From Macrostomum lignano (taxonomy: Eukaryota): a stretch of 64,000 bases of DNA. Below, one piece after another: positions 1,831 to 61,035 of this stretch. A program made the translations under genes and the position numbers. Location: contig NIVC01000591.1 in NCBI GenBank assembly GCA_002269645.1, positions 310,001 to 374,000 on the forward strand. The letters run 5' to 3'. Under the pieces are notes generated by a model. The model was not told the DNA's origin. It searched no databases and worked only from the letters and a program-made list of their open reading frames with translations. Every line of letters begins with the position of its first letter. The stretch's first letter is position 1.

Positions 1831-22512
<20,682 letters not shown>

Positions 22513-23389
22513 GCGGTTCTGAACCGAGAATCGAGAAAATTTGTCACTTTTTGTTAATTAATAATTACGAGTATGTTTGACTTTTTATATAGCCTGCATG
22601 TGTACTGCAGCTAGCTCTTCACGTTTTGATAGAAATTTGCGGAAGTTGTTCTTTGATCGTTTAAAGTTTTGCCACTAAATTTGCTGACAATATTGGCTAT
22701 AGAGCTCTTTCGGATTTGTTTTGTTTGAAGAACCTAACGATGGTGGAGAAACTTGATAATATTTTACTCAACAAAGGTGTTTTTGATCCCATGATTGTTT
22801 GTTATTCTCAAACTTTTAGAGCTGATTATTTTGTAATTATAGCGAACCCAATATTCCATACAGTAAAAAAGGACAAAAAATTGAGAAATACACAATAAAT
22901 TTTAAGTGTCGTTGGCTTGTGCTAGCGGTGGTAACTGAAGTAAAAAACCGTAATATTTCTTTTAAAAATACGCCACGGAACATGAAGAAGCAAGTCTTAA
23001 ACTTGTGCTGAATAACTAAATAATTTCTCAATAATTGAGACCAAAAGAGACAAAAATAAAGATGACAGGATAATTAATCCAATGGACACATACTCAGCAA
23101 TATTGAAAAGTGGCCACTCTGTGCTCCAGTGAGCAATTTCTCTGGGACTGTTCGGAATTAAAAGATACGAGAAAACTGATCGGGGTGGCTTTAACCCGTC
23201 CAACCCTCGCACATTGCTCCCCCATTTTGTCAATCAAAATGTCAATCAAAAATGATTTGGTTTCAGTCAAACTGACCAATTTTACCTAAATATAAAGTTT
23301 AGCAGAACCAGAGAGCAAAATCAAAATTGAGCAAAGTCTCTAGCTTAGCTAGGAAACTTTTGGAGGCAGCGGACTGTTTGCACCCTGGA

Positions 23390-23680
23390 GAACTTGAAGC
23401 GACATTGTCACTTAACCGGTGAGAGGCATTACTGCCCATTTCCGCCGACTCCCCTGAGCAGGCGCACACTCACACAGGAGTGTACAGCGGCCCTAACTTT
23501 ATTTCTCGTAACACATACATGTACACCTAAAGGTACGTACACTTTACTATGCCGTCACTTCGTTGCCCTCAAGCTGGGCGTTAAATGCCCGAGCACACCC
23601 AAGGCCGAGACTCCAACTTAGTCCCAAATTAATGTGCGACTGTACTTGAGGTCGAGAATGGGTTGCTGGCAAACAAGGGA
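23390..23680 (-). mobile_element. Dispersed short interspersed repeat (unclassified), copy 2
   Basis: Reverse-complement homologue of 3840-4090. Confidence 0.7.
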
Positions 23681-23840
23681 AGACCGTCGCGTTAAACCAC
23701 TAGACTACGACACCCCTTTTAACAAGACACTACTTTACAATGACAAAATTATTGTTCTGGAATAAAACTGTAGACAGCAGAACAGAAAGTAGGTTAGAGC
23801 AGTTTATTAGTATTCCTACAGAGTTCGCGACAGTCGTTTG

Positions 23841-26800
23841 TTACTTCCCAGAAGCCGTCATGGCCCGCTTGTCGCCCGTTCTGTTCGGAAAATCCGCCGG
23901 ATTCTTGGGAACGCAGCCGCGCTGCTCAAGATCGAAAATGAGATGAGACCAGTTCGGATCGCGTCTCAATAGACTCTTGTTTCCTGAAGTGAGACATTTT
24001 TCAAGTTCAAAAATCCAGTTACACAATGGCTAAGCAATTAGTCATTAGCGGACAATGCACTAGTCTACCTGCGTGCGAACATTATTCCGCAGTTGAATAT
24101 GCTCATAAAGATCCTAAATGCTACCACGTGTTCAATTTTTCACAACCTTCTTCAAAAGAGTCAAAAGACGCACCTACAATGACGAGGCCTCGCTGAGCTC
24201 TCGTCAGCGCTACGTTGGTCTGGTTCTCGTCAGTGATGAAGCCCAGGAACTTCTTCTCCCAGCCGGGCAGCGGGTTCGCCTCGATGTCATAGTCCGGCAT
24301 AGAGCGGACCAGACTCAGCAGCACGTACGCGAACTCGCTGCCCTGACAGGCGATCACCGTGTTCACCGTTGGCATCGCCAGGTTCTCCTCCTTCAAGCGC
24401 CGCGTGATCTCGGACACCTGGTACTTGTACTGGGACATCACCGCGATGCACCTGCGAGGATCCTTCTTGTCGTCTCCGCTGAGCCGATTGTGAATCTCCT
24501 TGTAGACTCGAACCTGAACACCGAACACAGAACTTGTACGGATCAGTCTAAATACTAAAAGAGCTATTGATGTAACCACGCTCTGGTCGTGGGATATAGC
24601 AAGGGAAATTTTTCAAAAGTACCTCCGATCTCCGTGAACCCCCTGAGCAGAGCCGTCGAGACTGGGCCAGCTCTTTGACCAGGCCTGCTGACTCCCGCTC
24701 TGCTGCGCCCCCTGCTGCCTCGCTCCGTCTCCCACCCCACCACACGAGCCTTTCCGGAGCCCCTATCTCTTTCTGCACCTCCCCCGCTACTCTATTTCCC
24801 ATGCGCTCTACCCTATCTATTATGTATTTTTTCCCACTTTCCCTCTTTTTTTTCTTTTTGGACTGTTTTACCTGCGCTTTCCCCTCTCTTCCCGTGCCTA
24901 CTCACAGTACTTTGTGCGCTCAGCGTCGCCCCACCCCTTAGTAAACTCCCAAACGGTGAAGCAAGCCTTGTGACCCCTCTTTCCCCTCGATGACTCATCG
25001 ATGACTCACCACCCCCTCTTGCACTACCTTTTCTCATGCTATTGTTCTCCTTCCCAAATTTCTCATGCGACACCCACCCCACCTCTGCTTCTATTGTTCT
25101 CGTTTTTTATTCTTTCGTTCTTTTCACACCCGATTTTCACATTTTCCCGGATTTTATATTTCTTTTGTTCTCGTTTTCGCACCTAATTAGCACCTTTTCT
25201 CCAATGTTTACTTTTCTATTGTTCTCGATTCTCCCCAATTATCTCCGATTTCCATTTCCTTTTTTCTCGACCCCAGCCCCATTGTTCTCAATGTTTGCTT
25301 GCACAACACTTTCTCGACCTCCCGCTGCGCCAATTAGCCCCCACCCCACCTCTGGATTGCGCCATTCTCATGTTGCTATGCCGTTCTCATGATTCTCATC
25401 ATGACTCATTCTGACGTCATTTCGCCGGCAGCCAATCAGAGAGAGGGAGTCATGGAAACGACCTTGGAGCGGCGGCTGGGAAGGCTATTTAAGGAAGCGG
25501 TTTTCGGCGTGAGAACCTTAACTTCGGCTCTCCTCTTGTCCTTCTTTGGACTTGCTATCAGACGTTGATCTGACCCATTCGTCTATAGGACAAATCTCTG
25601 CCGGTCCGTGGTCTGTTACCGAGAAGTTACCTCAGCTCCCCAAGTGAGCTCACCTGCCGGCCCGCGGTCTGTTACCGCCCAGCATCTTCAGCATCGCCTG
25701 AACTACATCAGCGCCTCGTCGCTTCGGCGTATTACCGCTTCACAGTCTGCCTGTCTGCAGCCAGCAGCCGCCCTCGGTCACTCCATCGCTCTCTCTCTCT
25801 CTGTGCAGCTGCCGGTAAGTTCCTGTTACTAATTTGTGCTCTAATTGCCTTTGCTTATCCGGGGTTTGCTTATTTCCCATTGCTTGATTAGAGAGCTGAG
25901 CCAATTGTGATACCGTATCTTTTGCTGTATTTTATTCAATAGTGAAGCCGCCTAATTGTCTGATTATTTTGCCTAAGGGCGTAATTATTAACTATTAACT
26001 AACTCCATCATTATTCACACTTTCACCATCATTTAATTCATGGCTTCCTAAGACTTTCTCTCTGGGTAGCAAAGCATAAGGAAGTTTGGGTAAGCTAATG
26101 CTCTCCCCGTGCAAAGCCCGCCTGTGAGTGCGTGCTGTGGGTCCGTGTGCGGGCAGTAGAGGGAATTAGTGAGTCTTGGCACAGAATGGCAGTAGGAAGG
26201 TTGCAACTGCAACCTTCGCCCTGAGCGAAGCTGATGCGTCTTTTCGCCCTGAGCAATCTAAACTATAGCTAGTACATGTTCATCTCACACTACTCTTAGT
26301 AATTGAAATCGCAAGTCCGCCTCGCTCACAGCCACAAAGGATCCCCTGCTGAGAAATCCTCTAGATTGAGCCCAGAGTTCCCGATCATGCCCCAAGCAGA
26401 GTCCCTTTACTCGGCTGCATGTGTCTCCCCTGTTAGCCTAAATCCCCTGGTAACCAATCCAGGCGGGGCTCTAGCCTCGAGAGGTTTGGTAGTAAGATCC
26501 ACGTGCGCCAGGTCACATAGAGTGGCGGCAGCCACTCGGTCATGCTATGGCCGAGTGACCAACTATTGCACCTTGGCTACAGGTTGGGTCCATGTGGGTC
26601 CTTGGCCCTCTGGTCACGAAAGCGCTACCAAAGCTATTAATCATGTGGGCGGGACAGTCTGGTGCTGGAGATCCGTCAGGTCATTGCCCGGTCATAGTCA
26701 TTGCCCCTATGGTCATGCGTTCGCTTCTCAACGAAGCGGACGGGCGACAAGGGTGGTTACATCACTATCTAGAGTTCTTCACCATCGCATCAACGAAACT

Positions 26801-29800
26801 CACCACAGTCTTGATCTCCAGCTCGTTCTTGTATGAATCTTCGCGACCGTCCTCGGTGGCCACGAGTGTTCTCTCCTCCTGACCCTGGATATGCAGGAAG
26901 ACGATTCTCTCCTCCTCTCCCATGGGGTGAAAATCCTTAGCTGGAACATCAGGCAATGTGTCAAAAGGCTGATTGCGTCTTACACCAGGCCAACATCCGT
27001 GAAGGACGTTCGCGTTGCGCTGAGTCAAGAGACCGTGCCTTCTGACTCCGTTGGCACCGCGACTGTCGAACAAGTCATGCTTAGCCAGTCGATGCCAGTT
27101 CAGCCCAGTCCAACTAGCGTTGCCTTGAGTTCGGGTCTCGGCATCCAAGACACCCGTCCAGGACTTGGACGGCTGGGTGCGCAGACCTCCGGAGTCTTTC
27201 ACTGTGTAGAAACGCTTCGACGGAAAGTCCGCTAAGCTCGGATGCTAAAAATACATGCATTGGACATGAAGGCAATAAAGGTATTAACTACACTACTTCA
27301 CGCAGAGTTTATGTAATGTGACTGCTTTTTACATGCGACTCACCATTCTGTACTGCTGATTGAGCATGACCGAGTCGAGGCAGTGCATCTCAAGAAACGT
27401 CCTGCTCAGACCCAACTCTGCCGCCGTCTTGTTCTGAATGATTGGAGCGAGCTGCTTGTGGTCGCCGATCAGCACGACTCTCTCCGCATACTGGGATGCG
27501 GGTGTTCCTATGAGATTTGCTTTTTGTACTCCCAGACAGGAAGGCACTTCTTTTTCGACGTTTAGTCGACCAACTATCGGAACGAGCAGCTCAGGCTGAG
27601 TGCACATTCCAGCTTCGTCGATGATGATCTGAACGAATCGACAAGCGCGCTGCAGCACAGAACTGCAGCTGACGGAAGTCGTGCAAAGTACGACGTCGAA
27701 GTTTTGCAGCACCCGCTCTTTCGATTTTTGCACTTTGTCTTTGTAAAGCTTCACGCATCCCTGGACGAGTGCGTCTTCTCCCACCTCCTCCTCGGCGAGC
27801 TCCAACGCGCCTCGACGTCTCGATCGCAGTCGATTGTTTCGAATGAACCTATCGAACCGAGGGTTTCTTCCGGCTGCGGTTTTGATTGCTGCTTCCATGG
27901 TAACCGGAGCCTCAGTCTTGCTTCCAATAAACAGTTTGAACGCGTCATCAAACCCGCCAATGATGTAGGCGTCGTCGCTGTTCTCTCTGCGAATGAGCTC
28001 GTGCAGTGCGAAGCGCCTCATTGCAGGCGACACTTCATCGGCCGTCGAAATCTCTCCGGGCACGGGGTAGTGCATTCGCTCTACCTGCTCGCTGTAAACT
28101 CGAACCATTGAAGGACACTTGTCAGCCAGCAAGTCCCGTGACGCCTCGATGATGACGTCGACCGAGCGATTCGACGGTCCGCAGCACAGCATCTGGCGTC
28201 GACTCTGACGCTTTCGATTCTCGGGTCTCTTGCCTATGTACCTGTCAGAAGATGAAGTTCTGACTGGCATTCGACCGGGAATTTTATGTCCTCTACGATG
28301 TGAGTATTGAACCACCTGAAAGCCGTCGTCCTGACTTTCCTTAGAAGTCTCAGCAGAGTTATCTTCGGTTTCGCTTTCGTTGTCGTCCTCATCCTCGTCT
28401 TCACTGCTGTCCTCGAGATTCATGAAGCCATCGCTTCTGTGATGGTTGATGAATACGAACCAGTAGATCAGCATTACTCCTGTTGTTGTCTTGCCTGTTC
28501 CTGTGTCAGCGTTTTAGATTTTTTGATAAATTGACAAATGATAAATTGAGGAGCTGTAAGAACTTTTTAGGCATTTAGTGTGTTTTCTAACCTGGTGGTC
28601 CCCAGATGAGGGAGACCTGTCTTTGCACTGCTGCATTTAGAGCTTCTGCTTGTTGCTTGTTGCAGGGAACGAGTCTGTCCGAAACTCTAATTTGGAATGG
28701 CTGCGTTTTGCTTTTAGCTAGAGCATTGCGGTACAACATTTCGTCAACTGAAATATAGTTATGATTTTTATGCAAATTTTAAAAATGATGAAAACGTAAT
28801 TTAATTAGCAAGTAGCAAAGTAATTTGTCTTACCACCCCTGATATTCTCGTTCTGATCCCATCGTACAAGTCTTCCTGCGATTCGATGCTCGCTCTGGCC
28901 CCGCAACGTCTGCAACACTAATTCATGCCTTCTGATGGGCAGAAACTTCATTATCAACTCCACGGTAGCATGGCGGAGGGTCTCTTGGGAAGCACTGCCG
29001 ACGGGACTGACTTCGTTCAAATGGAAGACAACAAAGTTGCAAAAGTGCGCAGACTTGTCATTGCACCGGTCTGACCGACAATGGATGCCGTCAAACACGA
29101 GCAGGATGCCACCGTGGCCAACCCACGTGTACTCGTCTTGCACAGCACGAAGGCAAATGTATTCGGCATAGCGTTTAACGCTTTTCGCGGCCTTGAAAAC
29201 AGCATTGGTAACGTCCGGTACGCCTCTCTTTTTACCTTTCTTAGTCTCAGTGCTTTGGTTCAACTTTTTTTGCCAGGATTTATTACTCTCAATCAGTACA
29301 GAGTCTGTAAAGCAGATGTTTCTGCGCTGGCACAGAGACTCGGTTAGATTGAACATTCCCAACCAGCGGTTGTTTTCGTCGTCCCATTTCCACGTAAGCG
29401 GCACGTCACAGAGTACAAAAGTTTCATTATTGCTGATGGATACTGAAGCAGACTCCATCGCTACAATGCCCTGCCAAATGTCGGCATACTCAACCACGTC
29501 ATCGTATGAACGCTTGCTGCGGCGTTGAGCCACCTGCTCGAAATTGTCAGCTGGTCGGCGTCGATGCGCGAGGCAAACTGAAAATGTGTCGCAGATTTCC
29601 AACACCTGAACGGTGGGAATGAGCATTCCGTGATTCCTGACTGCTCCAATTTGCGCTCGCACTTCGTCGCCAAGCAAAAAGTCTCGATAAAAATTCACGA
29701 TGCTCCCGGCCGTGTCAGACAAAGCATAAATCTTAGCAACGCCGCGCCTTTCAGTCAAGTCTGCTTCGATCAAATCCAAACTCGAAACGCCGCACTGTTC

Positions 29801-32548
29801 AAAGTCTCCATTTTTGCTTAAAAGCTCTTTCTTCATAGACAGCAGCTCACGTGACCGGAAAAATGTGTTATTGCTGCTGTTCGCCACTTTGATGTCACTT
29901 CGGTGACTTTTTCGAGACTTTTCCGTATCACTGCTCGTAACGACTTCAGCGGCAGTGTGCCGAAGAATTCTGGCTGTCCAGTTGCAGCGAACTATTTTTT
30001 CCTCCTCAATCACGCTGGGCACTGCGCTGAGACTCAGCGACCGAAACTGGACAGTTCGAGCCACTTTTGGTGACTGATCGAGCATCTTATGCTGCACTGA
30101 AAGACCATCCTTATCAACTGAAGAAATCTGTACAACATCTCTAACGGGCTTTTTTGCTAAATCCTCACCAAAATCTGCACACTCACAGCTGGATTCAAAC
30201 CGCCTAGTCTTCTTCTGAACGGCAGACAAATGTTCACAGACTTTACTGATGTCAGATGTTGGCCCAAGATACTTTTCTCCTTGGTTAAGAACGAATCTTA
30301 CCGCTCTATGGACCATCAGGTCCGCATAGCGACGCATTGGACTCGTGAAGTGAACGTAGTCTTCCTTTTCCAAACTGAAATGAAGCCTGTTCTCTGAAGG
30401 GCTCTCACTGTACTGCGCCAGCTCACACAGTCCGTGCCAGTCCCGAATCGCCAGTTTCAAATGCGGAAACCGTCTCTCGTCGTACAAAAGCGACAATGCA
30501 CCTTTGTTATCGCCTCGTTGACAGAACGCTCTAAGATTTTTTGCGTCCTCGTTGTGCATCTGGAACGGAATGTTCGAGCTCAGGACCTCCTTACCGACGA
30601 GTTTCAATGCGCGACTCAGCTCAGCAGAATGTGTCGCCTTCGGTCCGTGACGCACAATCCAACGGGTCACGTCGATCTCTCGAGGTCGCTGTTGCACTCG
30701 AATTGGGTAAGCTAGAACCGAATCCCCATGCCTGTGCAGGAAGTCTCCGACCGCTGAGTTCGCAGCTAGCATCAGCTCCTCTACAAGTGCGCTCGTCTCG
30801 GGGTACGAATCGTTTTCATGACGAACAAATGCAGCCTGACCGAGTCTTGCCAGTCTCCAATCACGAGTGACCGGCCATAGCCGGAGCAGCATCTGCTCGA
30901 TTCGAGGCTCCAAGGCGCCTGTCTCGCTGTCAAGCACTCGCTGAACATCCTCTTTGTTTAGACGCTTGTCAGATCGGATCACAGTCAGACAGATTCGAGA
31001 ACTCTCTACAAGTCCATTGGCGTTCAAGTTAAACACGACTGACACGCATCGTCTGTCCTGTCCTTCGACAAGACTGATCAGAGACTCGGCAAGTTGTCGT
31101 GGCAGCATGTGGTTTGCAGTTGCTCCTTTTTGCTTGGCACCTTCGCTTGGATAATATGTTACGCCTCGACGTCTGGCCTCTCGATCGATTGGTGTGTCCT
31201 CACCCACAAACTCAGCCAAATCCGTGATGTGCACGCCTACAGTAAGCTTCCCATTTTTGTGCTTCTTAAGACTAATCGCATCATCCATGTCTTTCGTGTC
31301 CGGACCGTCAATAGTCACGGTAATGTGACTTCTGAAGTCATTTCTGCGTTCAGGGACGAAGTCGTTTCCGGCAACTTCGCGTATTCTTTCAACGTCTCGA
31401 AATTTATCATCTTCGCTGTATGGGAGTGGAATCCCATGAATTAGTTGCAGCAGTTCAACGTCTTGACTAAATGAATGTGCCTTGGAAATCACGCAAATCA
31501 CATTACCTTTCGGATAGTAATTCTGTACAGGCCACTCAGTGATGCAGACCACAAAGAGATGCTCACAGTCGTGTTTGATAACTTTGAAAACAGAATCTTC
31601 AACGAATATAAATCGATTTTCAGCCTCATCGAGCACAGGTCGGTAAATGGAGACTAAATTTTTGTTGGCATAATCGTAGGAAATTTCTTTTAATCGTTCT
31701 CTTTCAGTAATCAAACCGAATTTTTTGCGAAGCTGTCTCTGTTCATGCGGCTTTCTTCTCTGTCTCCTTTCGTGTTCTCTTCTAGCAAACGAGTTGTCGT
31801 ACGAGATCTTCGGCACGGTGCCGCACAGAGGTCGCATGCAGGTGCCGAGAGCGTCGAGCATTTCGCAAACCAATAGTTTGTAGCGCAGCTTAACGCGCTG
31901 CTTGTAGACCCCGACAACCCTACCGGATGGCTCCAAGCTGGTTTGACTGCTCTGACCGCCAGGACTATTGTTGGCCTGTAATTCCTCGGCATTCATCAAC
32001 TCAACGATTACCTGATCGTCTTCGCAGGCCCTGCCGCAGTTGCTGCGACCTTTGAGCTGGATCTTAGAAACTTGATCGTCTGGCGAGACCGGACAGGCCC
32101 AACCGAGCTGAGGACCGTCCAAGTGAAGATGGCAGATTTTATATTTGGCTGGCTGTTCAGCCATTCGCTCAAGCAGCTGCGCTCGTGTCTGCATTGCCTC
32201 GTATGGCGGCTTGTCCGTGAGCTTGCCGAAGAATCTCCCGACTGGGAAGGGTCCGCTACTGAAATCGATGACTTTCACAACAAACTGCGAGCCTTGGGTG
32301 AGCGAAATCTCCTCGTCAAGCTGGATTTTCTCTGGGAAAGCCCGATCCACTGGCACCGCGAAGCTACAGCGACTGGCATCACTGCCCAGGACGCAGCGGT
32401 AGAACACATCGGGCTGGTTCCTGAGCAGGTCCTCCAATTTATTTCTCGGTCTCAAAATGCTGGCTTCAAATTCGTCTTCTTGTTGACGGTCTTCAAATAG
32501 CCGGATTATAGAAAGCAATTCCTCTCGGTTGGCAACTCGTTGGGACAT
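23841..32548 (-). CDS. HELZ2-like RNB exoribonuclease-SF1B helicase, copy A (1983 aa). Exons (minus) 32548-28834, 28747-28592, 28500-27344, 27244-26804, 24513-24174, 23983-23841
   Basis: RNB motifs TIDGPDTKDMDD, VEELMLAAN and HFTSPMRRYAD. UPF1-like helicase motifs IWGPPGTGKTT, GPSNRSVD, IIDEAG, LIGDHKQL, QYRMHP, CQGSE and NVALTRAQ. GT-AG introns of phases 1,1,0,0,1. No in-frame stops in the spliced model. Confidence 0.9.
24568..26764 (+). mobile_element. Solo LTR (Gypsy-like, 2197 bp) in intron 4 of copy A
   Basis: TG...CA ends with a 12-bp terminal inverted repeat (TGATGTAACCAC / GTGGTTACATCA) and a 4-bp TSD CTAT (24564-24567, 26765-26768). Internal CCAAT (~25430) and TATTTAA (25486-25492) on the plus strand. 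The orthologous 92-bp intron of copy B shows the empty site. No coding capacity recognised. Confidence 0.85.
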
Positions 32549-33243
32549 TGCTGTTAAGGGGCCAAGAATTTTTTATTAAACACGTTTGCTACAATACCTG
32601 TAGTCTAGCAAACTGTTTCGAAAAAATTTAGATAAGCCTTGTAGTTATCGAAAAAGAAAATTTTTCTGCCTCTGCTCCCAATATTATAGCCGTCTTATGC
32701 TTGCAGTTTGCCTGAAATTTCCTGGAATTTCCACGGTCAGACTTCGGCTGTATACAAGGTATTATGGGTATAATATTTATTATTAGTGTACGCCTCAGAG
32801 CTTACAGACATGCAGACTGTACGCTTAAAATGCAAGTACGCTAGAAAACAAAATTACCCTCCCTTATAGCAGATGGCTTCGTTTTACTGGACAGCGCTGA
32901 AGAAGGAGTAGAGGGGGAGGTGAATTGCTCTTCTCTTCTCTCTCTAGCCCTTGTTACTCCCTGTCTGGCAACCAAACGTCAACCCTATATTTAGCTTCGT
33001 AGATTAACCGTACCATTGCACTTTCCACAACTGTGGTTCCATGAAAAATGCGAAACAAGCGACTGCAACCACGGTCCCGCTAAATCACAATACAAGCCTT
33101 TATCGAGATGGCTGGCATGGGCTGAGCAACTTATCGATGATACTGATAATAATAATATTAATATTATATTATTTGATTACACCTGCTCCAATCAAGGACA
33201 ACTAAAGCAACGTATATACAGGAGGCAACACTCACGCTTCATA

Positions 33244-33857
33244 GAAAAAGTTTTGAAGGCCACTTTTCGCCGAGAAATACACTACGGAGAGAGGAAGCTT
33301 ACAGTTTTTCAGAACAAAAAGTGTTATTGCTTTCGATAGGAGGCAGACCCAATGTTCATCTTTTGCTATGCTGTGCCTTTCTTACAGCTCTATTAATATT
33401 CATAAAGCTTTTCATTTAGAAAATTAGAATTCTATGGTAATTTTGATTCTACAAACGCTTGCATATGTCCTGTGTCTAAAAACCATTAAAATGGCACGGC
33501 TCGGCTCATTGATTTTATGAATCTATTTTGTCATTCTTAGCTGACTATGTAACAACATGTGTAGCAGAAATGATAAAACAGATTCCTAAAGCCAAAGATT
33601 CGAGCCGTGCCTTGCATTTTTATGATGTCTAGGTACAGGAAATGTACGTTGAATCAGAAATTAACGCAGAATCCTGATTTTCTGAACGAAAAGCTTTATG
33701 AATATTAATAGAGCCATAAGAAACGCACAACATATCAAAATATGAACATTGGGTCTGCCTCCTATCGAAAGCAACAACGATTTTTGTGCTGAAAAATGAA
33801 GACTTCCTATCTCCGTAGTGTATGCTTCGGCGAAAAGTAGCCTTCAAAACATTTTCC
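33244..33857. mobile_element. Foldback/MITE-like element with ~230-bp imperfect inverted arms (33244-33478 and 33629-33857)
   Basis: The arms are reverse complements (e.g. TTGCTTTCGATAGGAGGCAGACCCAATGTTCAT vs ATGAACATTGGGTCTGCCTCCTATCGAAAGCAA). A further partial copy lies at ~53035-53200. Confidence 0.75.
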
Positions 33858-33911
33858 AAAGATTTCAAGCGTTGCGTCCTTCTACTTTAGTAGTCCTTGG
33901 CCCCAATTGGG

Positions 33912-34157
33912 ACAGATGTGCAACTGACAGTTTGACCGCAGCTTTTTGCGCGGCACATCTGAAGGCTGCGTACGGCTGTTCACTCCAAGAACTGGAGGTT
34001 CGCCGCGCACACAATCAATTACCCCAGCTAATGCTGGCACCTATTTTACAGCTGGGTGAACTGAAGTAATACAGAGTTAAGTGCCTTGCTCAAAGGCACA
34101 AATTGTTCCAGTGGTGAGTCGTTAGTCCGACGCTCTGACCACTAGGCTACAACCCGA
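33912..34157 (-). mobile_element. Same SINE family, copy 3 (B-box region deleted)
   Basis: Homologous to 14681-14950 with an internal deletion. Confidence 0.75.
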
Positions 34158-34162
34158 TATAT

Positions 34163-34664
<502 letters not shown>

Positions 34665-35606
34665 ATAAAGAGTAAACAGAATAGAAAGCAACCCAGTTGC
34701 TTTTAAGTCTCACACCGCGATGTAATTCGGAAACAAAAAACTGCATTGTCGTTTACTGTGTTGCCGACCTTTTTTGCGCTTATCTTAAAAAAATAGCAGT
34801 ACCATTGCACTGCAAAAAGTCTGGAAAGTGGCAACTTAGCCTGCCAGTTTATACTATCTAATCCTTTTCTCTTTTCGCAAGCGCCCAAATGTAAGGTTGC
34901 GTACATTGTTGCGTACATTGTTGCGTACATTGGCCTGCTTTCTGCATAGCTATCATTGCGGACGGAAATTCCAGGAGAATTAAAACAGTAAGAGCTACGT
35001 GAGCTAGAAGTGTACTGAGGCTGAGGAGAGAAAGTATAAATTTTCAATAATGTACTTCGGAGTGTACTGTGAGCCTTTGTTTCTAGCTGATTCAAGAAAT
35101 TTACTGGAAAAACCGTGAGCTGTTTGGACGTAGCGCTTTATAATTTGCTAGTAGGCAAGGGCCTAGGCAAGCCGTTAATTTGGCAGTGTTGTGAAAACGT
35201 TGACATCTCTGATTTGGCTGCTTTTAAATCACCAAATTTTTAACTCCACTGCATGATCCGATAAGTCAGAGGCATCAGGGTAAGTAATATATATACATAT
35301 ATATATAAATGCATGTAACTCGTAACAAGGCCACAATGTCCTTCTCCAATAACCGATTTTATCTGTGGGTTTTAGTCTGTTTGATTCGTTTCACTGAATT
35401 TAGTGCCAATGCCATCCGTTTGCAGACGTTGTTTCAGCAAAATGCAACCTTAGCAGCTTTTAATTTAATCAGAGATTGAAAACAATCTTGAAAACCATTA
35501 AAAATTTTAGTCTATGGTGAAAACCCGTGCCAATCAAGCCGGCCTGCTTTGTCCTGTAGAACATAATGCTCAAAAATCACTTTTACTTTGTCCATCCGTC
35601 AGAGCC

Positions 35607-38600
35607 ATGGCGGAACCACCTGACCCAGATAGATTCAAAGACCAAAGGATGCTCGAGCTGGTTCGTTTCTTCCAAGACCGTCAACAGTTGGACGACTTCG
35701 AGAGCGGAATTTTGAATCCAGTCAACCGCCTAAAAGACTTAGCAAAGGAAAAGCCACAAATTTTCAAAATCTGCACACTTGGAGTAGATTCCAACTTTGC
35801 TCAAGTTGCAGTGCCAAACGACAGTTCTGACAATGACGCCAGTCCAAAGCACATTTACATGAACAAGAAGATCACGATGGCGTATGGTACTCGCTTTGTG
35901 GTAGAAATCATTGAGTCAAGCAAATTAAGCATCACTAGAGGCATTTTCAGGGGCAGATTGATGGACAAGCCAGCTTATAACATGAAAACTAAAGCGCAAC
36001 TTATGCAGCGACTGCAGAATAAGCCTGACAAGTACAAGGTCTGCCGACTGCACCTGGACGGACCGCAACTCGCCTGGGCCTATCCGCTGTCAGCCGAGGA
36101 TCCGATACAGAAGATTCAGCTGAAAGGGCGCAGCAACAGTGGTAGAGCTTGCGAAGACGACGAGGTAATTGTCAAAGTGCTGGAGGTCGATGAGAACGGA
36201 GTGGAAGCTCATGGCACCGTTGTCGGCATGTGGCGTCAGAATGAGAAGCTAAAGTACAAGCTGTTCGTGTGCGAAGTCATTGAAGACTACGGAACTCTCA
36301 TGAGGCCGCTGTGTGCGAGCGTGCCGAAAATTGGATACGATAACCGATTTGCTATTTGGGAGCATCAGAGAAGAATTCACAAATTCATGACACCCGCCAT
36401 GCTTGAAAGACAGGCTAAAGGAATGCTTTCCTCTTCTCAGATCCTTAGTATGAATCCTCATGAGTTCGCTAATAAAAATTTTGTGTCTGTGTACAGTCCA
36501 GTCGAGGATGACAGCAGCGAGGAAATTGAGTTTGTTGAGGAAAGGTGCGAAAGAATTCTAAAGCATGATTGCGATAAACTGTTCATTGTTTGCTTTGAAG
36601 ATTGGCCAGTCGACCGATGGTACCCGAGAGGCAAAGTCGTGCATGTCGTTTTAAAGGAGCCGTCCTTTTTAAAGACCCTTGATCTGATTCAGGTCAGCCT
36701 CTCGGTGCCACCGCACATCAAACTGACATGCAGTCTGATGACCCGACAGGTAATGGCTATCGAAAGAAGAGTACAGCAAAAGGTGGACCTAAAGTCGGAA
36801 AAAAGAGAAGACTTCAGAAATAATTTGACTGTGACTATTGACGGCCCGGACACGAAGGACATGGATGATGCAATTAGTCTGGCTGTGGCAAAGAACGGCA
36901 AGCTTATTGTCGGTGTACACATTACCGATTTGACCGAGTTTGTAGGTGAGAACACACCAATCGATCGAGAGGCTAGACGTCGAGGCACGACATACTATCC
37001 CAATAAAGGAGCCCAACAAATGGGCGCCCTCACTAATCACATGCTGCCGCGACAGCTCGCTGAAAAATCGATCAGTCTGGTCGAAGGACAGGACAGACGA
37101 TGCATGTCAGTCGTGATTAGCTTGAACGCCAATGGACTTGTAGAGAGTTCCCGAATCTGTCTGACTGTGATCCGATCTGACAAGCGTCTAAACAAAGAGG
37201 ACGTTCAGCGAGTCCTTGACGGCGAGACAGGCGCCTTGGAGCCTCGAATCGAGCAGATGCTGCTCCGGCTATGGTCGGTGACTCGAGATTGGAGACTGGC
37301 AAGACTCGGTCAGGCTGCATTTGTTCGGCAGGAGAACGAGTCGTACCCCGAGACGAGCGCACTTGTAGAGGAGCTGATGCTAGCTGCGAACTCGGCAGTC
37401 GGAGACTTCCTACACAAGCAACGGGATTCTGTTCCAGCTTACCCGATTCGAGTGCAACAGCGACCTCGAGAGATCGACGTGACCCGTTGGATTATGCGGC
37501 ACGGACCGAAGACGACACATTCTGCTGAGCTGAGTCGCGCATTGAAACTCGTCGGTAAGGAGGTCCCGGGCTCGAACATTCCGTTCCAGATGCACAACGA
37601 GGACGCAAAAAATCTTAGGGCGCTCTGTCAACGAGGCGACAACAAAGGTGCATTGTCGCTTTTGTACGACGAGAGACGGTTTCCGCATTTGAAACTGGCG
37701 ATTCGGGACTGGCACGGACTGTGTGAGCTGGCGCAGTACAGTGAGAGCACTTCAGAGAACAGGCTTCATTTCAGTTTGGAAAAGGAAGACTACGTTCACT
37801 TCACAAGTCCGATGCGTCGCTATGCAGATATCATGGTCCACCGAGCACTGCGAGTTTGTCTAAAATCCATTCAATCAGTCGAATGCTCTTATGGATCTGA
37901 TGAAATCTGCAGATTTTTAACTGCCGCTACTATTCGAAATAAACGCTTTAGTCGTCGTAGTAAAGGTTCCGAAACGGCACTTCAGCTTAAAGAGGTGCCG
38001 CAAAGGGTTGTCATCCAAGTGTCGCAACTTGATGAAGACGGGATTGTGTTCAGACACGAGTACCTGGACAGTGAACCAAGACTTGCCAAACTTGTACAGT
38101 ATCGATTCTTAAACCTTTGCGAAAAACCCGAAGAGAAGGAACCAACCATGGCTGTATGCTGCAAATGGAAAGCTCGAATCCTGCTACATACTACTGTAGC
38201 GGCTGAACGGTCTCCGAACGACAGAGTAGGACGCACTGGGGCGCAGACGTGGTGTGATCCAATAAAGGTTGCAAGTTTTTCGTCCGTTACAAGTTTTAGA
38301 CCCACGGAGCTGCTGCGGGCCAAGAATGAGCTTCAGCGTCACAAGTGGGATTATTCAAAGTGCGAATTGTCGAGTAGCAGTCTTCTAGAAGCTGATTTAG
38401 GCGACAGAAGAGGTGTATCGAATGTTTATTCTACACCGGATGGACACGGAAGCGTCGTGAGGTTTTACCGAGACATCCATCTTGGCGACGAAGTAAATGG
38501 TCAGATTGGCGCCATGAGCAATCACGGAATGCTGGTACCGACGCTGAAGCTTATCGAAATTTGCGATACCTTTGCTATCTGCCTTGCGCATCGGCGCCGT

Positions 38601-41600
38601 CCTGTGGACAGTTTTGAGCACGCGTTGCGTCACTACATTAAAGTAGTTTACCAGGATATTGACGAGTACGTTAAAATCTGGCAAAACTTTGTTGCCATGG
38701 AAGCAGCTACAGTGTCAGTCAGCAACAACGAAGCGTTTGTTCTTTGCGAAGTGCCAATTGTGTGGAGACAGGACAAACGGAATAACAGATGGCTGGGAAT
38801 GTTCAACTTGACTTCCAACTTTTGCAGCGCGAACAACTTGAGCTTCACCGACTCGGTTGTTACTGAGGAACTGAAATCATGGAGAAAGAAGCTCGAAAAG
38901 ACAAGGAAAAATTCTGAAAAGCGCGTGAAGGATGTTACAGACGCTGTTTTTACTGCCGCACAACGCATTACTCGATACTCCGAGTACATCTGTCTCCGAG
39001 CCAATATCCGCAACGAGTACACTTGGATTGGCCATGGTGGAGTCCTACTCGTATTTGATGGCCTCCACTGCCGATCTAACCGGTGCAACGACAAGTCCGT
39101 GCACTTCTGCAACTTCGTAGTGTTCCACCTCAACGAGGTCAGCCCAGGTGACAGCGCTCCACAGGAGACTCTGACCAACGCTACCATTGAAATCGTGATG
39201 AAGTTCTTACCAATAAGGCGACACGAGTTGGTGCTGCAGGCGATGCGGCATCAGCGCGGAATCAACGCTGCAGACGCCCTGGTCCGTTGGGACGAGCAGA
39301 AAAATGCCGAAGGAGGTAAGGAAATGAAATGAGATTCGCAGGTTACTTAAGGAATTATTCAAACAACAAATACCAATTGATCTGTGTCCCCTTTCTTCTA
39401 TACATCGGTTCAATTGTTTTACATTTTGATCCCGTATTAATATTTTTTGACAGTTTAAGAAAGGGTCTTCTGAGTGTAATCTATAGAATCACGTTTATAG
39501 TCAGTCATTTTTGCCTTTCAGTCGACTTCTTGATCTACAAAAATACTTTAGTGGAAAACAGCATCAGGTCCTATGATATTCGCGTCGGGAATGAGAACGC
39601 AGGGCAGAATCTTCGATTGGTTCCCTGCAATGATTGCCAAAGACAAGCTCTGGAAACCGCAATCAAAAAGCGTATTTCTCTTATCTGGGGACCTCCTGGT
39701 GAGCATAGAAACAATTCTGAAAATTATTTTGTGAGGTGCGTTTGCTATTATACTCAAGATTCTCGCTGGTTGCACAAATTAAAAAGTACTCAGTAGATGT
39801 ATCACTTTTGTAAATTTTTAAGTGCAACTAAATTTCATATCCAGCTAGCGTGAAATTGCATCGCATACTTGCAGTTGCAGTACGCATTTCAAACGTTCAT
39901 CAAGTAAAAGCCACTTGTAAATAAAACAATTAAATGCCTAGCTAATCACAACAAGCTAATGTACATCAAGGGTAGACACTTTGAGAGACAGATTTTCCGG
40001 CAAACATTTGTTTGTGTACGGAAAACAGAAGCTGTTCTCTCACTGATGGTATACCTTTAAACACTTTTAGGCACTGGGAAAACAACAACAGGTGTAATGC
40101 TCATCTTCTGGTTCGTTTTCATCAATCGTAACCGGAAGGATGCTATGCCTGCCCCAGATATTATTCTCCCGAACGATGACGACGAAGAATATAACGAATT
40201 CGAAGACACACAGTACAGCGATGATGAGGAAGATGAGGAACAAGATGTTCAGGACGTATTTGAAGAAACGGAAGGTCTTCTACCTGAGTTTGAAGATAGG
40301 AAAGATGCCGTTGATGCTGAATTAACCAGAGCTAACAGAGATGGCTTCGAAGAAGTAGTTTATCGCCGGAAAAGTAGGCGTCGATTGTCATGCTCGACTT
40401 CAGCTAAGACTTTATCGGATAGCCGCAGATGGAATCCGCAACCGATCCGCAAATGTCAAAGTCGACGCCAGATCCTGTGCTGCGGACCGTCGAATCGATC
40501 GGTCGACGTCATCATCGAGGCGTCTCGGGACTTGCTGGCCGACAAGTGTCCCTCAATGGTTCGAGTTTACAGCGAGCAGGTAGAGCGAATGCACTACCCC
40601 GTGCCCGGAGAGATTTCGACGGCCGATGAAGTGTCGCCTGCAATGAGGCGCTTCGCACTGCACGAGCTCATTCGCAGCGAGAACAGCGACGACGCCTACA
40701 TCATTGGCGGGTTCGATGACGCGTTCAAACTGTTTATTGGAAGCAAGACTGAGGCTCCGGTTACCATGGAAGCAGCAATCAAAACCGCAGCCGGAAGAAA
40801 CCCTCGGTTCGATAGGTTCATTCGAAACAATCGACTGCGATCGAGACGTCGAGGCGCGTTGGAGCTCGCCGAGGAGGAGGCGGGAGAAGACGCACTCGTC
40901 CAGGGATGCGTGAAGCTTTACAAAGACAAAGTGCAAAAATCGAAAGAGCGGGTGCTGCAAAACTTCGACGTCGTACTTTGCACGACTTCCGTCAGCTGCA
41001 GTTCTGTGCTGCAGCGCGCTTGTCGATTCGTTCAGATCATCATCGACGAAGCTGGAATGTGCACTCAGCCTGAGCTTCTTGTTCCTATTGTTGGTAGATT
41101 ATCTACTGAAATATCCGTTCCATCTAGCTTGGGAGCCAGCAATCAAGCTTTCAGTAGAAAGCCAGCATCCCAGTATGCGGAGAGAGTCGTGCTGATCGGC
41201 GACCACAAGCAGCTCGCTCCAATCATTCAGAACAAGACGGCGGCAGAGTTGGGTCTGAGCAGGACGTTTCTCGAGATGCACTGCCTCGACTCGGTCATGC
41301 TCAATCAGCAGTACAGAATGGTGAGTCGCATGTAAAAAGCAGTCACATTACATAAACTCTGCGTGAAGTAGTGTAGTTAATACCTTTATTGCCTTCATGT
41401 CCAATGCATGTATTTTCAGCATCCGAGCTTAGCGGACTTTCCGTCGAAGCGTTTCTACACAGTGAAAGACTCCGGAGGTCTGCGCACCCAGCCGTCCAAG
41501 TCCTGGACGGGTGTCTTGGATGCCGAGACCCGAACTCAAGGCAACGCTAGTTGGACTGGGCTGAACTGGCATCGACTGGCTAAGCATGACTTGTTCGACA

Positions 41601-42545
41601 GTCGCGGTGCCAACGGAGTCAGAAGGCACGGTCTCTTGACTCAGCGCAACGCGAACGTCCTTCACGGATGTTGGCCTGGTGTAAGACGCAATAAGCCTTT
41701 TGACACATTGCCCGATGTTCCAGCTAAGGATTTTCACCCCATGGGAGAGGAGGAGAGAATCGTCTTCCTGCACATCCAGGGCCACGAGGAGAGAACACTC
41801 GTGGCCACCGAGGACGGTCGCGAAGACTCATACAAGAACGAGCTGGAGATCGACACTGTGGTGAGTTTCGTTGATGACAGACCGAAGAACTCTAGTGATC
41901 GAACTCTTGAATATTTATACTTACCAGTAGAATTTCTGTGTTTGGTGTGTAGGTTCGAGTCTACAAGGAGATTCACAATCGGCTCAGTGGAGACGACAAG
42001 AAGGATCCTCGCAGGTGCATCGCGGTGATGTCCCAGTACAAGTACCAGGTGTCCGAGATCACGCGGCGCTTGAAGGAGGAAAACCTGGCGATGCCAACGG
42101 TGAACACGGTGATCGCCTGTCAGGGCAGCGAGTTCGCGTACGTGCTGCTGAGTCTGGTCCGCTCTATGCCGGACTATGACATCGAGGCGAACCCGCTGCC
42201 CGGCTGGGAGAGGAAGTTCCTGGGCTTCATCACTGACGAGAACCAGACCAACGTAGCGCTGACGAGAGCTCAGCGAGGCCTCGTCATTGTTGGTGAGGAT
42301 CTTAGCCAATGTTTATACATGACACGTGACCGTTCGTGTGTGCATCATAATCTTTCAATATTTTCATGCCCTGAGCAAACCTTTGACGCCGCTGCTCAGG
42401 TAACCGCAAGCTGTTGCGTCGCGATCCAAATTGGTCTTACCTGTTGCACGATCTCAAGGAGCGAGGCTGCATTCCGAAATCTGCCGCTGACTTCCCAAAT
42501 AAGACGGGGGACAAGAGATTCTTGACAAGAACTGGGAAGTGGTGA
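35607..42545 (+). CDS. HELZ2-like RNB exoribonuclease-SF1B helicase, copy B (2020 aa). Exons 35607-39315, 39522-39698, 40071-41320, 41420-41860, 41953-42292, 42400-42545
   Basis: Same RNB and helicase motifs and identical intron phases as copy A. ATG 35607 aligns with the copy A start. An in-frame upstream ATG at 35514 is an alternative. Confidence 0.9.
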
Positions 42546-48789: not shown

Positions 48790-51700
48790 ATGTTGACACC
48801 AAAGGACTTGCAATTCAATAAAGATCTAAGAAAATATGAGCCAAGTCAATACGGCAAAATATTTCTTAGAAACAAGCTACGATCCAGCAGCCATTTATAT
48901 GTCAAATCACTTAGTCAGCACACTGGTTCAGTCAATGCTATCGAGTTTGACAGCAAAAATGAATTTCTTGCTAGTGGTAAGTGCTTATAATATTTTTAAT
49001 GACCCTTCACCCCAACCCTACAGTACAAGCTTTAATTCTTAACTCTTGTCTTAGTCTAGAATTTAATCTTGATCTCGCACAAATACTAAACCTTCATCTT
49101 ACTACACAGTGACTAAGCCTATCCCTACATCCCCACCCTGCACCCTATCCCTACATCCCCACCCTGCACCTCATCCCTACATCCCCACCCTGCACCCTAT
49201 CCCTACATCCCCACCCTGCACCCTATCCCTACATCCCCACCCTGCACCCTATCCCTACATCCCCACCCTGCACCCTATCCCTACATCCCCACCCTGCACC
49301 CTATCCCTACATCCCCACCCTGCACCTCATCCCTACATCCCCACCCTGCACCTCATCCCTACATCCCCACCCTGCACCCTATCCCTACATCCCCACCCTG
49401 CACCTCATCCCTACATCCCCACCCTGCACCCTATCCCTACATCCCCACCCTGCACCCTATCCCTACATCCCCACCCTGCACCCTATCCCTACATCCCCAC
49501 CCTGCACCCTATCCCTACATCCCCACCCTGCACCCTATCCCTACATCCCCACCCTGCACCCTATCCCTACATCCCCACCCTGCACCTCATCCCTACATCC
49601 CCACCCTGCACCTCATCCCTACATCCCCACCCTGCACCCTATCCCTACATCCCCACCCTGCACCCTATCCCTACATCCCCACCCTGCACCCTATCCCTAC
49701 ATCCCCACCCTGCACCTCATCCCTACATCCCCACCCTGCACCTCATTCCTACATCCCCAACTTCCCCCAGGCGGAGATGACACCTCAATCATTCTGTGGA
49801 ACATCGAGCGCGACATTCTGGTGGCCGACAGCAGCAGCAGCAGCCAGTCGTCGCCAACTCGCATGTCGGAGCGACACATGTCGAACATATTCGCTCTGCA
49901 GTTCGACTGCCAATCTCGCTCGCTGATCTCAGCCGGAAATGATGGGATAATTTTCCTGCACGACCTCTGCACTGGCCAGCTGATCAGGGGCATGGTTCGA
50001 ACCCGGTCCGTGCTGGGACTGTCCTCGCATCCCTGCAACCCGGCTGTGCTTGCTGCCGCTTTTAGCGACGGCCGGGTCATTCAGTACGACACCAGAGCTG
50101 CTGAGCGACCTCCGGCTATGCCTATTCTCACCGACTGCCTGATGGCCACCTGTGTAGCCTATCATCCAACTGACGAGCACCTGGTGATGGCGGCAACCGC
50201 CGACACCGGGGTCTGTCTGGTCGATGTCAGACAGCCGATGCAGCTTTGTAAAATTGTGGAAAGAGCCGCTGCTAGGAATGGAGGTTTGTTTGTTTGTTTG
50301 GTATTCCCATCCCAGTAATTCATTGATCGATTAGACATGAATTAGGCACTGATTAGAGATCGATTAGACTTGAATTAGGCACTGATTAGAGATCGATTCG
50401 ACACGAATTAGGCACCAATTATGCGATTCATTAGACACTAATTAAGCAAGTTATAATACCATCTATCATTCTCATCTTCCGCAGACAGCTGCTCATTAAA
50501 CGCCTGCTTTGATTCGACCGGCTCCTCAGCGCTGGTCGTAGGCCGCTGCCGCTGCCCGGCTCTGTACAGCCTGACAACCCCGGACCAGCGGGACTTCGAC
50601 TCTGCCAGCCAGATCGCCTTATTCGACGATGCCAACTATTACAGCTCCTGCACCAGCAAGTCCTGCTGCTTTGCCGGCCCTGACGACGCTTTTGTAGCTA
50701 CGGGCAGCGATTCCTGTCAGGCGTTGCTATGGCAACGGCCTAGCGGATTAGATAATCCGGCCATTAGAGATCATGCGGTGCGCGGTAGAGGAGTGGCTCA
50801 GGTTGACAAGGCCTGTCTGACTCTGACTGGGCATCAGTCTATTGTTAATCAGGTTTGGCTCTATTTAATTTCTAAGTTAATTTCTCTGTATCATTTCATC
50901 CTTTCACCAGTGCCCTCCACCGTTGCTAAGAATTGCTCTCAGCCATCTCAGAATCGCCAGTCACCATCTCAGAATCGCCCTTCAACATCTCAGAATCGCC
51001 CTTCACCATCTCAGAATCGCCCTTCACCATCTCAGATTCACTCTTCATCATTTCAGAATCGCCCTTCACTATCTCAGAATCGCCATTCACCATCTCAGAA
51101 TCGCCCTTCACCATCTCAGAATCGCCCTTCACCATCTCAGAAACGCCCTTTATCATCTCAAAATCGCCATTCACCATCTCAGAATCGCCCTTTATCATCT
51201 CAGAATCGCCATTCACCATCTCAGAATCTCCAGTTACCATCTCAAAATCGCCCTTAACCATCTCAGATTCGTCTTTAACCAACTCAGAATCCCTATTCAC
51301 CATTTCATAATCGCCATTTCATAATCACATGGAACCCACTCCGAACCCCTGCAGGTTCGGTACTGCCCCAGATTCGGTCTGATCGCCAGCTCCGGCGTTG
51401 ACCTCACAGTTCGAGTTTGGTCGCCCTTCTCTCTCGGGCCGGACTTCTCAGGCGGGGTGAATCCGTGCGACGCGCCACCGCAGCGCCAGGTGCACACGCA
51501 CTCCGAGTTTCTGAGCGGTGGGGTTGGCGGCTTCCTCGGCTCGGGCGCCGGCAACGGGCCGGCCTATCGCTCAGCCAAGGAGAAGCTGTTGTCGGCTTAT
51601 TTCGACTCGCTATTACAAAAAGACGTCTGCTCCTCAAACAAGAGTTCGAATTTTTCCGAGTCTTCATCGTCATCATCCGCCTCGTCATCGGATGAGGAGC

Positions 51701-56629: not shown

Positions 56630-57880
56630 GTAACTCATCTCTGTAACTCTCCAGTGTCTCATCTCTGTAACTCTCCAGTGCCTCATCTCTATAACTGTCC
56701 CGTGTCTCATCTCTACAACTGTCCCGTGTCTCATCTCTATAACTGTCACGTGTCTCATCTCTACAACTGTCCCGTGTCTCATCTCTACAACTGTCCCGTG
56801 TCTCATCTCTGTAACTCTCGGACCGTGTCTCATCTCTATAACTCTCCCGTGTCTCATCTCTGTAACTCTCCGGTGTTCACCTCTGCAACTCTCCCGTGTC
56901 TCATCTCTGTAACTCTCGGACCGTGTCTCATCTCTACAACTGTCCCGCGTCTCATCTCTATAACTCTCCCGTGTCTCATGTCTGTAACTCTCCCGTGTCT
57001 CATCTCTGCAACTCTCCCGTGTCTGATCTCTATAACTATCCCGTGTCTCATCTCTGCAACTCTCCCGTGTCTCATCTCTATAACTGTCCCGTGTCTCATC
57101 TCTGTAACTCTCGGACCGTGTCTCATCTCTATAACTCTCCCGTGTCTCATCTCTGTAACTCTCCCGTGTTCACCTCTGCAACTCTCCCGTGTCTCATCTC
57201 TGTAACTCTCGGACCGTGTCTCATCTCTACAACTGTCCCGCGTCTCATCTCTATAACTCTCCCGTGTCTCATGTCTGTAACTCTCCCGTGTCTCATCTCT
57301 GCAACTCTCCCGTGTCTGATCTCTACAACTGTCCCGTGTCTCATCTCTGCAACTCTCCCGTGTCTCATCTCTATAACTGTCCCGTGTCTCATCTCTGTAA
57401 CTCTCCAGTGTCTTATCTCTGTAACTCTCCCGTGTCTCATCTCTGTAACTCTCCCGTGTCTCATCTCTGTAACTCTCCAGTGTCTCATCTCTGTAACTCT
57501 CCAGTCTCTCATCTCTGCAACTCTCCCGTGTCTCATCTCTGTAACTCTCCCGTGTCTCATCTCTGTAACTCTCCAGTGTCTCATCTCTGTAACTCTCCAG
57601 TGTCTCATCTCTGTAACTCTCCAGTGTCTCATCTCTGTAACTCTCCAGTGTCTCATCTCTGTAACTCTCCAGTGTCTCATCTCTGTAACTCTCCAGTGTC
57701 TCATCTCTGTAACTCTCCAGTGTCTCATCTCTGTAACTCTCGGACCGTGTCTCATCTCTACAACTGTCCCGTGTCTCATCTCTGTAACTCTCCAGTGTCT
57801 CATCTCTACAACTGTCCCGTGTCTCATCTCTGTAACTCTCCCGTGTCTCATCTCTGTAATTCTCGGACCGTGTCTCACCT
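56630..57880. repeat. 24-bp minisatellite (GTGTCTCATCTCTGTAACTCTCCC) with block duplication
   Basis: Tandem units. A ~293-bp block is repeated (56896 vs 57189). Confidence 0.96.
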
Positions 57881-58179
57881 CTCTTGTCTATAACTTCAAA
57901 GAGTTTTTCTTTTACTCGCAACCTGTTAGACTATAGTTCACTCGCTAGGATGGAACAGAGATGCATAGGCGCATGCAGTTAAATTTATGACACAATTGTA
58001 GAGCCATGCAAAAGGGTATAACAGTCATATATTAGCCAAAAACAGTAAGTGATAATTAGCTTCTCCCCTAAGTAATTTTCTGTTGCTAACAGCTGTCCAA
58101 AATAGTGCATGCCGGTCTATAACCTTCTACTTATATGACTATACTAATGCGTTCTGCGTGACCTCTCCGTATTTCCAGA

Positions 58180-59371: not shown

Positions 59372-61035
<1,664 letters not shown>

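Follow-up and report, generated by a model that had tools for sequence, protein, structure and literature searches.

Mosaic near-identity of two head-to-head HELZ2-like genes in Macrostomum lignano, very probably a product of interlocus gene conversion

Two HELZ2-like genes, A and B, stand head to head in the window analyzed here, a 64,000-nucleotide stretch of contig NIVC01000591.1 of the Macrostomum lignano assembly Mlig_3_7 (GCA_002269645.1). Along their length, the two genes are in places almost identical and elsewhere strongly diverged, and we consider it very probable, as judged from the sequences, that this mosaic was caused by non-allelic (interlocus) gene conversion between anciently duplicated copies. 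Protein P0002 is encoded exactly in the window, and M. lignano proteins were matched when the 1272-residue open reading frame (ORF) of the plus-strand gene B was used as a protein query. The locus copy referred to below as L001 is window 42548-13841 in reverse, with identical sequence. Gene models were built from protein P0002 for gene A and from P0001 and P0123 for gene B. In these models, the start codons are 3058 bp apart, and the genes and exons are as follows:

23841-32548, minus strand: gene A, BOX15_Mlig018244g2, HELZ2-like, 1983 residues (spliced model equals P0002 exactly; Pfam)
32548-28834, 28747-28592, 28500-27344, 27244-26804, 24513-24174, and 23983-23841, minus strand: exons of gene A (spliced model)
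35607-42545, plus strand: gene B, BOX15_Mlig031546g2, HELZ2-like (splice junctions; Pfam)
35607-39315, 39522-39698, 40071-41320, 41420-41860, 41953-42292, and 42400-42545, plus strand: exons of gene B (spliced model)

Gene B encodes 2020 residues if a short island described below is kept and 1997 as annotated; over these 1997 residues, the window model shows 0 differences from the GenBank model (P0121). The exon columns of B, transferred to a second copy of the locus, translate to P0123 exactly. Introns 1 to 5 are 86, 91, 99, 2290, and 190 bp long in gene A and 206, 372, 99, 92, and 107 bp long in gene B. The original prediction had described introns 1, 2, and 5 as differing in length (86/206, 91/372, and 190/107 bp) and as impossible to align, and the spliced models reproduce these lengths exactly.

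The UniProt models of both genes that are based on an older assembly, ML2, are faulty (A0A1I8HYK8, P0001; A0A1I8HZU7, P0003; and A0A1I8I8U4, P0126). In P0001, 22 residues including RNB motif IV are missing, several exon segments are left out of P0003 and P0125, and P0126 is a frame-shifted fragment. Such defective models could mislead predictions of domains or activity. P0001 was considered as a third allele of gene B and rejected, because all five of its differences lie at the edge of a mis-called intron; no contig is recorded for this protein.

According to Pfam, both proteins combine an OB_HELZ2 fold (PF25049, E=1e-26 in both genes), followed by an RNB exoribonuclease domain (PF00773, E=1e-62 in both), with a UPF1-like superfamily 1 (SF1) helicase that lies C-terminal to RNB and matches AAA_11 and AAA_12. 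The closest solved structures are Upf1/NAM7 for the helicase and RNase R, DIS3L, DIS3L2, and Rrp44 for the nuclease. Helicase motifs I-VI are present, and the catalytic motifs DGPDTKDMDDA, HFTSPMRRYAD, GPPGTGKT, DEAG, and VALTRAQRGL are intact in both genes. Upstream of OB_HELZ2, the match to which starts at about residue 120-160, Pfam shows no zinc fingers and no first helicase domain, and the post-RNB linker of ~480 residues between RNB and the helicase has no Pfam match. Human HELZ2, a 3'-5' exoribonuclease induced by interferon, has two UPF1-like helicase domains, the first of which lies ahead of RNB together with N-terminal zinc fingers, and the family has been reported in invertebrates such as corals and molluscs (PMC10516660). 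The flatworm proteins share with human HELZ2 the OB_HELZ2 fold, an RNB domain in which the Asp motif and HFTSPMRRYAD are intact, and the SF1 helicase after RNB, but differ from it in the N-terminal region and in the Pfam-blank linker. Hence, genes A and B appear to encode HELZ2-like nuclease-helicases; as zinc fingers and a first helicase were not detected, we use this name and do not call them full HELZ2 orthologs.

Inverted matches between A and B were located with a repeat finder and blastn, which gave three matches: B36804-37846 with A31345-30303 (90% identical), B40455-41895 with A28209-26769 (95.8%), and B41912-42295 with A24554-24171 (96.6%). Tracts of near-identity were delimited by a three-state hidden Markov model (HMM) run on the alignment. 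The resulting segments, given as window positions in each gene and with dS denoting synonymous divergence, are as follows:

B36810-37079 (+) / A31339-31070: shoulder of T1, 24% different, dS ~1.1, RNB motifs I-II (HMM, dS)
B37080-37825 (+) / A31069-30324 (-): tract T1, 4.6% different, RNB motifs III-IV (HMM)
B40460-41076 (+) / A28204-27588 (-): tract T2, 1.3% different, helicase motifs Ia-II (HMM)
B41077-41164 (+) / A27587-27500: apparently unconverted island between T2 and T3, 88 bp, 44% different (HMM)
B41165-41876 (+) / A27499-26788 (-): tract T3, 1.4% different (HMM)
B41951-42295 (+) / A24515-24171 (-): tract T4, ~1.1% different, exon 5, helicase motifs V-VI (HMM and blastn)

The tracts are 345-746 bp in size, and within them A and B are 95-99% identical. 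Outside, the two genes differ at 41-51% of the aligned bases, save for a few selection-conserved patches at 14-24%. The divergence of T1 is graded, from ~9% at its 5' end to ~1% at its 3' end, and its 3' boundary, at B37826-37846, is sharp. In gene B, T3 runs from the last part of exon 3 through intron 3 (41321-41419) and exon 4 and reaches 16 bp into intron 4; the flanks of intron 4 are intermediate, with A and B ~78% identical. The 3' limit of T4 was set by the blastn match, the HMM segment (B41951-42303) extending to B42303. Of the six outer tract ends, three are exon-internal: both ends of T1, in exon 1, and the 5' end of T2, in exon 3. The original prediction had pointed to near-identity, synonymous sites included, over stretches of the RNB domain, the helicase, and exon 5, and its coordinates hold almost to the base in the blastn and HMM results. 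The 88-bp island at B41077-41164, the older and graded T1, and the disparity of intron 4 (2290 versus 92 bp) go beyond what it described.

A further part of that prediction, that the catalytic cores evolve in concert, can be retained for some of the motifs only. T2-T4 cover helicase motifs Ia-VI, and T1 covers only RNB motifs III-IV; these parts appear converted. The low-dS tracts do not include RNB motif I with its catalytic Asp cluster (B36840-36872), nor RNB motif II, nor Walker A of the helicase (B39689-40084); these motifs seem to be conserved through purifying selection alone. In the T1 shoulder, 16 of 32 four-fold sites differ, and this segment is conserved mainly by selection, with no recent conversion. 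The accompanying idea that substrate- or partner-binding surfaces diverge is speculation.

Silent sites and introns carry the case for conversion. Four-fold sites, taken from codons whose first two bases agree between A and B, differ at 25 of 357 positions (7%) in the tracts versus 170 of 263 (65%) outside (Fisher P=1e-55). A sliding-window profile of dS, which had been proposed as a check, is nonuniform: Nei-Gojobori values in 50-codon windows are 0-0.22 in the tracts versus >1 up to saturated or incalculable outside. Windows outside the tracts in which the protein is conserved keep saturated dS (e.g., dS 2.9 at a nonsynonymous divergence, dN, of 0.09), which shows that protein constraint does not lower dS. 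Because dS is saturated in the diverged regions, dN/dS is not measurable there. Intron 3, described beforehand as 99 bp in both copies with one difference, indeed shows a single A/B difference at this locus, at B41417, whereas introns 1, 2, and 5 do not align. The homogenized intron 3 and the exon-internal tract ends together indicate that genomic DNA was copied, and argue against copying of mRNA or selection on codons. In both genes, the GC content at third codon positions is 0.65-0.67 in the tracts and 0.51-0.52 elsewhere, consistent with GC-biased conversion though no proof of it.

A second A/B pair (PAA64396 and PAA64395) with the same head-to-head layout lies on contig NIVC01001754.1 (L002). 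The copies of the window locus are denoted A1 and B1, and those of the second locus A2 and B2. In a four-sequence alignment, both loci show the same mosaic with the same boundaries. M. lignano, a recently formed polyploid, has three subgenomes with ~1.4-2.4% divergence in single-nucleotide polymorphisms (PMC10733133), and the two contigs would therefore represent homeologous or haplovariant copies of the locus. Between the loci, the ratio pN/pS outside the tracts is 0.16 for A and 0.43 for B, which suggests that both genes are under constraint. A1, A2, and B2 each have an identical protein counterpart in the ML2 assembly, and B1 has one that departs from it only in five residues at a mis-called intron edge. 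Mlig_3_7 was assembled with Canu 1.4 (errorRate 0.04) and then polished by Pilon with Illumina and RNA-seq reads; the agreement with ML2 is a control for assembler and polishing, not for reads.

Over the 28.7 kb compared, the divergence between L001 and L002 comes in blocks. It is ~0-1% over the whole B gene including its introns and 4-10% in the A-B spacer, in part of an insert in intron 4 of gene A, and in the 3' flank of A (window 23217-23954). These blocks may stem from subgenome chimerism of the contigs or from a faster turnover of noncoding DNA.

The tracts differ in age. Four-fold differences amount to 17 of 115 (~15%) in T1 versus 8 of 242 (~3%) in T2-T4, which indicates that T1 is the older. 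The two genes also differ in how their copies have fared since the loci separated. Synonymous divergence between A1 and A2 is 6.3% in the tracts versus 2.3% outside (P=2e-4), the corresponding values for B1 and B2 being 1.1% and 1.6%; within the tracts, the A pair differs from the B pair with P=6e-6. The excess was tested on synonymous sites only, since noncoding flanks differ by 4-8% between the loci, and it persisted. In the tracts, 77 sites are private to one A copy versus 6 that are private to one B copy. The GC polarity of the private A sites is uninformative, with 36 weak-to-strong versus 28 strong-to-weak changes. A1 differs from B1 by 1.3% in T2 and 2.2% in T3, versus 3.2% and 5.1%, respectively, from A2.

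A GENECONV-style test, a type of analysis that had also been suggested with the original prediction, gave a significant result for A1 and B1: a run of 23 polymorphic sites at which A1 equals B1 (B41290-41413) was matched in 0 of 5000 permutations. With tract sites only, and with a 24-bp patch collapsed to one site, an A1=B1 run of 13 sites was left (P=0.0016). We lean toward the view that B-into-A conversion events took place after the two loci split. The simplest reading is that B overwrote part of A1 after the split, within ~B40733-41551 and skipping the island (the share in T3 being ~41232-41551); that B overwrote smaller patches of A2 is less certain. By a rough site-pattern partition, based on our own arithmetic, A1 would have lost ~40%, and A2 ~20%, of the differences that formerly separated A from B in the tracts. 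An old duplication with repeated recent conversion, as originally proposed, accords with the saturated silent sites outside the tracts and near-zero divergence inside them, the homogenized intron, the differing tract ages, and the apparent post-split event.

Intron 3 of A2 has 20 private differences, including the dense 24-bp patch. A micro-inversion was considered for this patch and rejected, as the best inversion leaves 12 of 15 mismatches, similar to shuffled controls. P0126 (445 residues, 78% identical to the helicase query) was considered as a third paralog that could serve as donor or outgroup, and was rejected as a fragmentary, frame-shifted ML2 model of gene A. The sole further relative in M. 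lignano, Mlig017669, has 34% identity, too little for it to be of use at the nucleotide level.

Several observations weigh against the interpretation given here or limit its finer points. The mosaic is known only from assembled contig sequence; ML2 and Mlig_3_7 share PacBio data and are hence not independent. Of the assembly length, 36% is chimeric between subgenomes (PMC10733133), and such chimerism could disturb the fine-scale comparison of A1 with A2. Within the tracts, the run test for A2 and B2 was not significant and the fragments were not robust, and in T1 the sites private to A1 are intermingled with those private to A2 instead of forming blocks (runs test P=0.076). Differences of 4-8% between A1 and A2 are also seen in noncoding flanks and in the first half of the intron-4 insert, which only A carries; since B cannot donate there, part of the A asymmetry may have another cause. 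Protein searches found no sister-species sequence, and the private A sites are unpolarized without an outgroup.

Gene conversion at this locus could have proceeded through double-strand-break repair or heteroduplex formation, with the neighboring inverted paralog as the template. The copied unit would be genomic DNA, introns included, in stretches of a few hundred bases. T1 would have been last homogenized long ago, and T2-T4 at about the time when the subgenome copies of the locus separated (four-fold divergence of ~3% versus ~2% silent divergence between locus copies). In at least one later event, B sequence would have overwritten part of the A copy in the window after the loci had separated, and recent events would have run predominantly from B to A. 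Conversion may be limited to stretches that are similar enough to pair, and strong divergence would bar it from introns 1, 2, and 5, the 88-bp island, the linker after RNB, the acidic insert of the helicase, and the N-terminal third. As pairing needs similarity, purifying selection on the enzyme core would indirectly sustain conversion. The tract boundaries can be explained neutrally, by a requirement of conversion for prior identity.

A more far-reaching possibility, which we consider rather doubtful, is that gene B is a master copy that, in each subgenome separately, repeatedly overwrites the helicase and distal RNB modules of its partner A, with selection keeping the acidic insert of the helicase, the linker after RNB, and the N-terminal OB/CSD region distinct. 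If true, the pair would exemplify a design with a shared engine and different targeting modules in a nuclease-helicase family that in mammals is linked to antiviral and anti-retrotransposon defense. In that case, the mini-intron left out of conversion would not be a passive leftover but would be maintained as a barrier or serve as a paralog-specific splicing element.

The best surviving alternative to interlocus conversion, although an unlikely one, is a one-off segmental replacement, in which a single recent partial duplication or chimeric event put the 3' half of B and, separately, a piece of RNB into an old paralog, without any ongoing concerted evolution. T2-T4 are contiguous save for the island and intron 4, and their divergences are similar (1.1-1.4%); evidence that the private sites of A1 and A2 form blocks is marginal by the runs test, which also suits such an event. 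T1, however, is several-fold older than T2-T4 and internally graded, and homologous sequence to either side of it is diverged, so that a double exchange would be needed. Moreover, the intermediate flanks of intron 4 and intron 3 of A2 imply layered events, and the asymmetry between A1 and A2, together with the significant A1=B run, points to an event after the split.

It is less likely still that reads from the two paralogs corrected or polished one another during assembly, so that the near-identity, or the fine differences between the A copies, were made in silico. The assembly by Canu with an error rate of 0.04, the polishing with Illumina and RNA-seq reads, and the redundant, partly chimeric character of an assembly of three subgenomes give this idea some substance. 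Mis-mapping, however, homogenizes only sequence that is already near-identical and cannot turn a divergence of ~45-50% into one of 1-5%. The same tracts with the same boundaries are carried by two separate contigs, and the A1, A2, and B2 proteins (and B1, save for five residues) recur in ML2, which was made with a different assembler. Polishing with RNA-seq reads does not fit tracts that include an intron and of whose six outer ends three are exon-internal, and the 20 A2-private differences in intron 3 are too dense for cross-mapping. As a source of fine-scale differences, and of these only, an artifact is possible.

Purifying selection alone, acting also on synonymous sites or RNA structure and keeping the tracts identical with no exchange of DNA, has next to no probability, for although the tracts span conserved enzyme motifs (RNB III-IV and helicase Ia-VI), the equally or more critical RNB motif I and Walker A lie outside them with saturated or near-saturated silent sites, intron 3 is identical save for one base, conserved-protein windows elsewhere have dS >2, and four-fold sites contrast at 7% versus 65%.

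The island that separates T2 from T3 is in large part treated as an intron in some gene models. In the GenBank model of gene B, B41096-41164 is a 69-nt GT..AG intron. The corresponding 84 nt of gene A (residues 1600-1627) are spliced out in three ML2 models but retained in the gene A model of GenBank. The reading frame continues through the segment without a stop codon, and removing the segment restores the Upf1 spacing between motifs II and III. The sequence thus suggests that the island is probably a mini-intron or exitron, one that conversion never crosses.

Two further features lie in intron 4 of gene A and between the genes:

24568-26764, no strand assigned: insert in intron 4 of gene A, 2.2 kb (terminal inverted repeats, flanking repeat)
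32549-35606, no strand assigned: A-B spacer between the divergent start codons, containing a (GATA)128 microsatellite at 34156-34667

The intron-4 insert has 12-bp terminal inverted repeats (TGATGTAACCAC) and is flanked by a 4-bp direct repeat, CTAT. It is present in both A copies and in neither B copy, and accounts for the length of intron 4 in A as compared with B. No Pfam-recognizable ORF was found in it, nor a further copy within the window. The insert resembles a non-autonomous DNA transposon. Between L001 and L002, the half nearer exon 4 (~26900-25700) is 4-8% different and the other half 0-1%.

No retained homology between A and B was found in the spacer, save for an inverted repeat inside a 989-bp segment (33167-34155) that adjoins (GATA)128 and is absent from L002. 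This repeat is foldback-like, with arms of ~265 bp each (33244-33507 and 33602-33856) that are 81-88% identical. The inverted repeat (33244-33856) was considered as a remnant of a palindromic duplication and rejected, as it sits in a locus-specific insertion that is missing from L002.

Beyond the A/B pair, a neighboring gene of 2208 residues lies on the plus strand at window 13841-22512 (L001 20037-28708), with no Pfam match recorded. It holds a 15-bp unit repeated 45 times at 21508-22181, and L002 likewise has this gene beside its A copy. The window also contains many long arrays of mini- and microsatellites, at 4600-12800, 21508-22181, 49118-51315, and 56634-62879, with, for example, 20-26-bp units in 25-80 copies and (GACA)416 at 59372-61033. 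These arrays account for the extreme skews of GC and AT along the window and are consistent with the reported 15% tandem-repeat content of the M. lignano genome.

For work on annotation or evolution in M. lignano, it follows that A and B cannot be treated as simple paralogs. Primers and designs for RNA interference or CRISPR that are placed in the helicase or distal RNB regions would match both genes, and trees or dS dating based on these regions give misleadingly young duplication ages. Gene-specific sequence is confined to the last exon, the linker, and the N-terminal third. The locus offers a clean, small-scale example in which conversion would be continuing independently in the subgenomes of a neopolyploid, with a diverged mini-intron bounding the tracts.

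The ampliconic palindromes of primate Y chromosomes undergo arm-to-arm conversion, and their continuous arms are >99.9% identical, including intergenic DNA. The flatworm pair resembles them in its inverted arrangement and in an apparent intrachromosomal conversion that keeps copies alike. It differs in that its arms have mostly diverged beyond alignment, only four short tracts being alike, and in that the upstream regions are without homology.

Interlocus conversion has been reported for gene pairs in either orientation and is negatively correlated with distance, which makes proximity a supported factor; the relative conversion rates of the two orientations were left open (PMC3966223). That the inverted arrangement favored conversion in the flatworm pair, as originally proposed, is a conjecture for this single type of locus. 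The head-to-head hsp16 and hsp70 pairs of C. elegans described in the same review are likewise close, oppositely oriented paralogs, with tracts of hundreds of bases that may hold short introns and are confined to parts of the ORF without reaching the flanks (PMC3966223). Compared with these, the flatworm pair is otherwise saturated at silent sites, so that its mosaic is extreme, and it shows four tracts of at least two ages with an apparent predominance of B-to-A events. A resemblance also exists to mammalian gene pairs under long-lasting concerted evolution, which are described as old duplicates with stretches homogenized by continuing conversion, such that paralogs are closer to each other than orthologs (PMC2720389). 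In that study, the orthologs are those of other species, whereas the "orthologs" of the flatworm genes are the two subgenome copies of one species. In the literature searched, we found no description of gene conversion at this locus or in Macrostomum paralogs. The case presented here is a further clear instance of well-documented interlocus conversion, rather than a new kind of mechanism.

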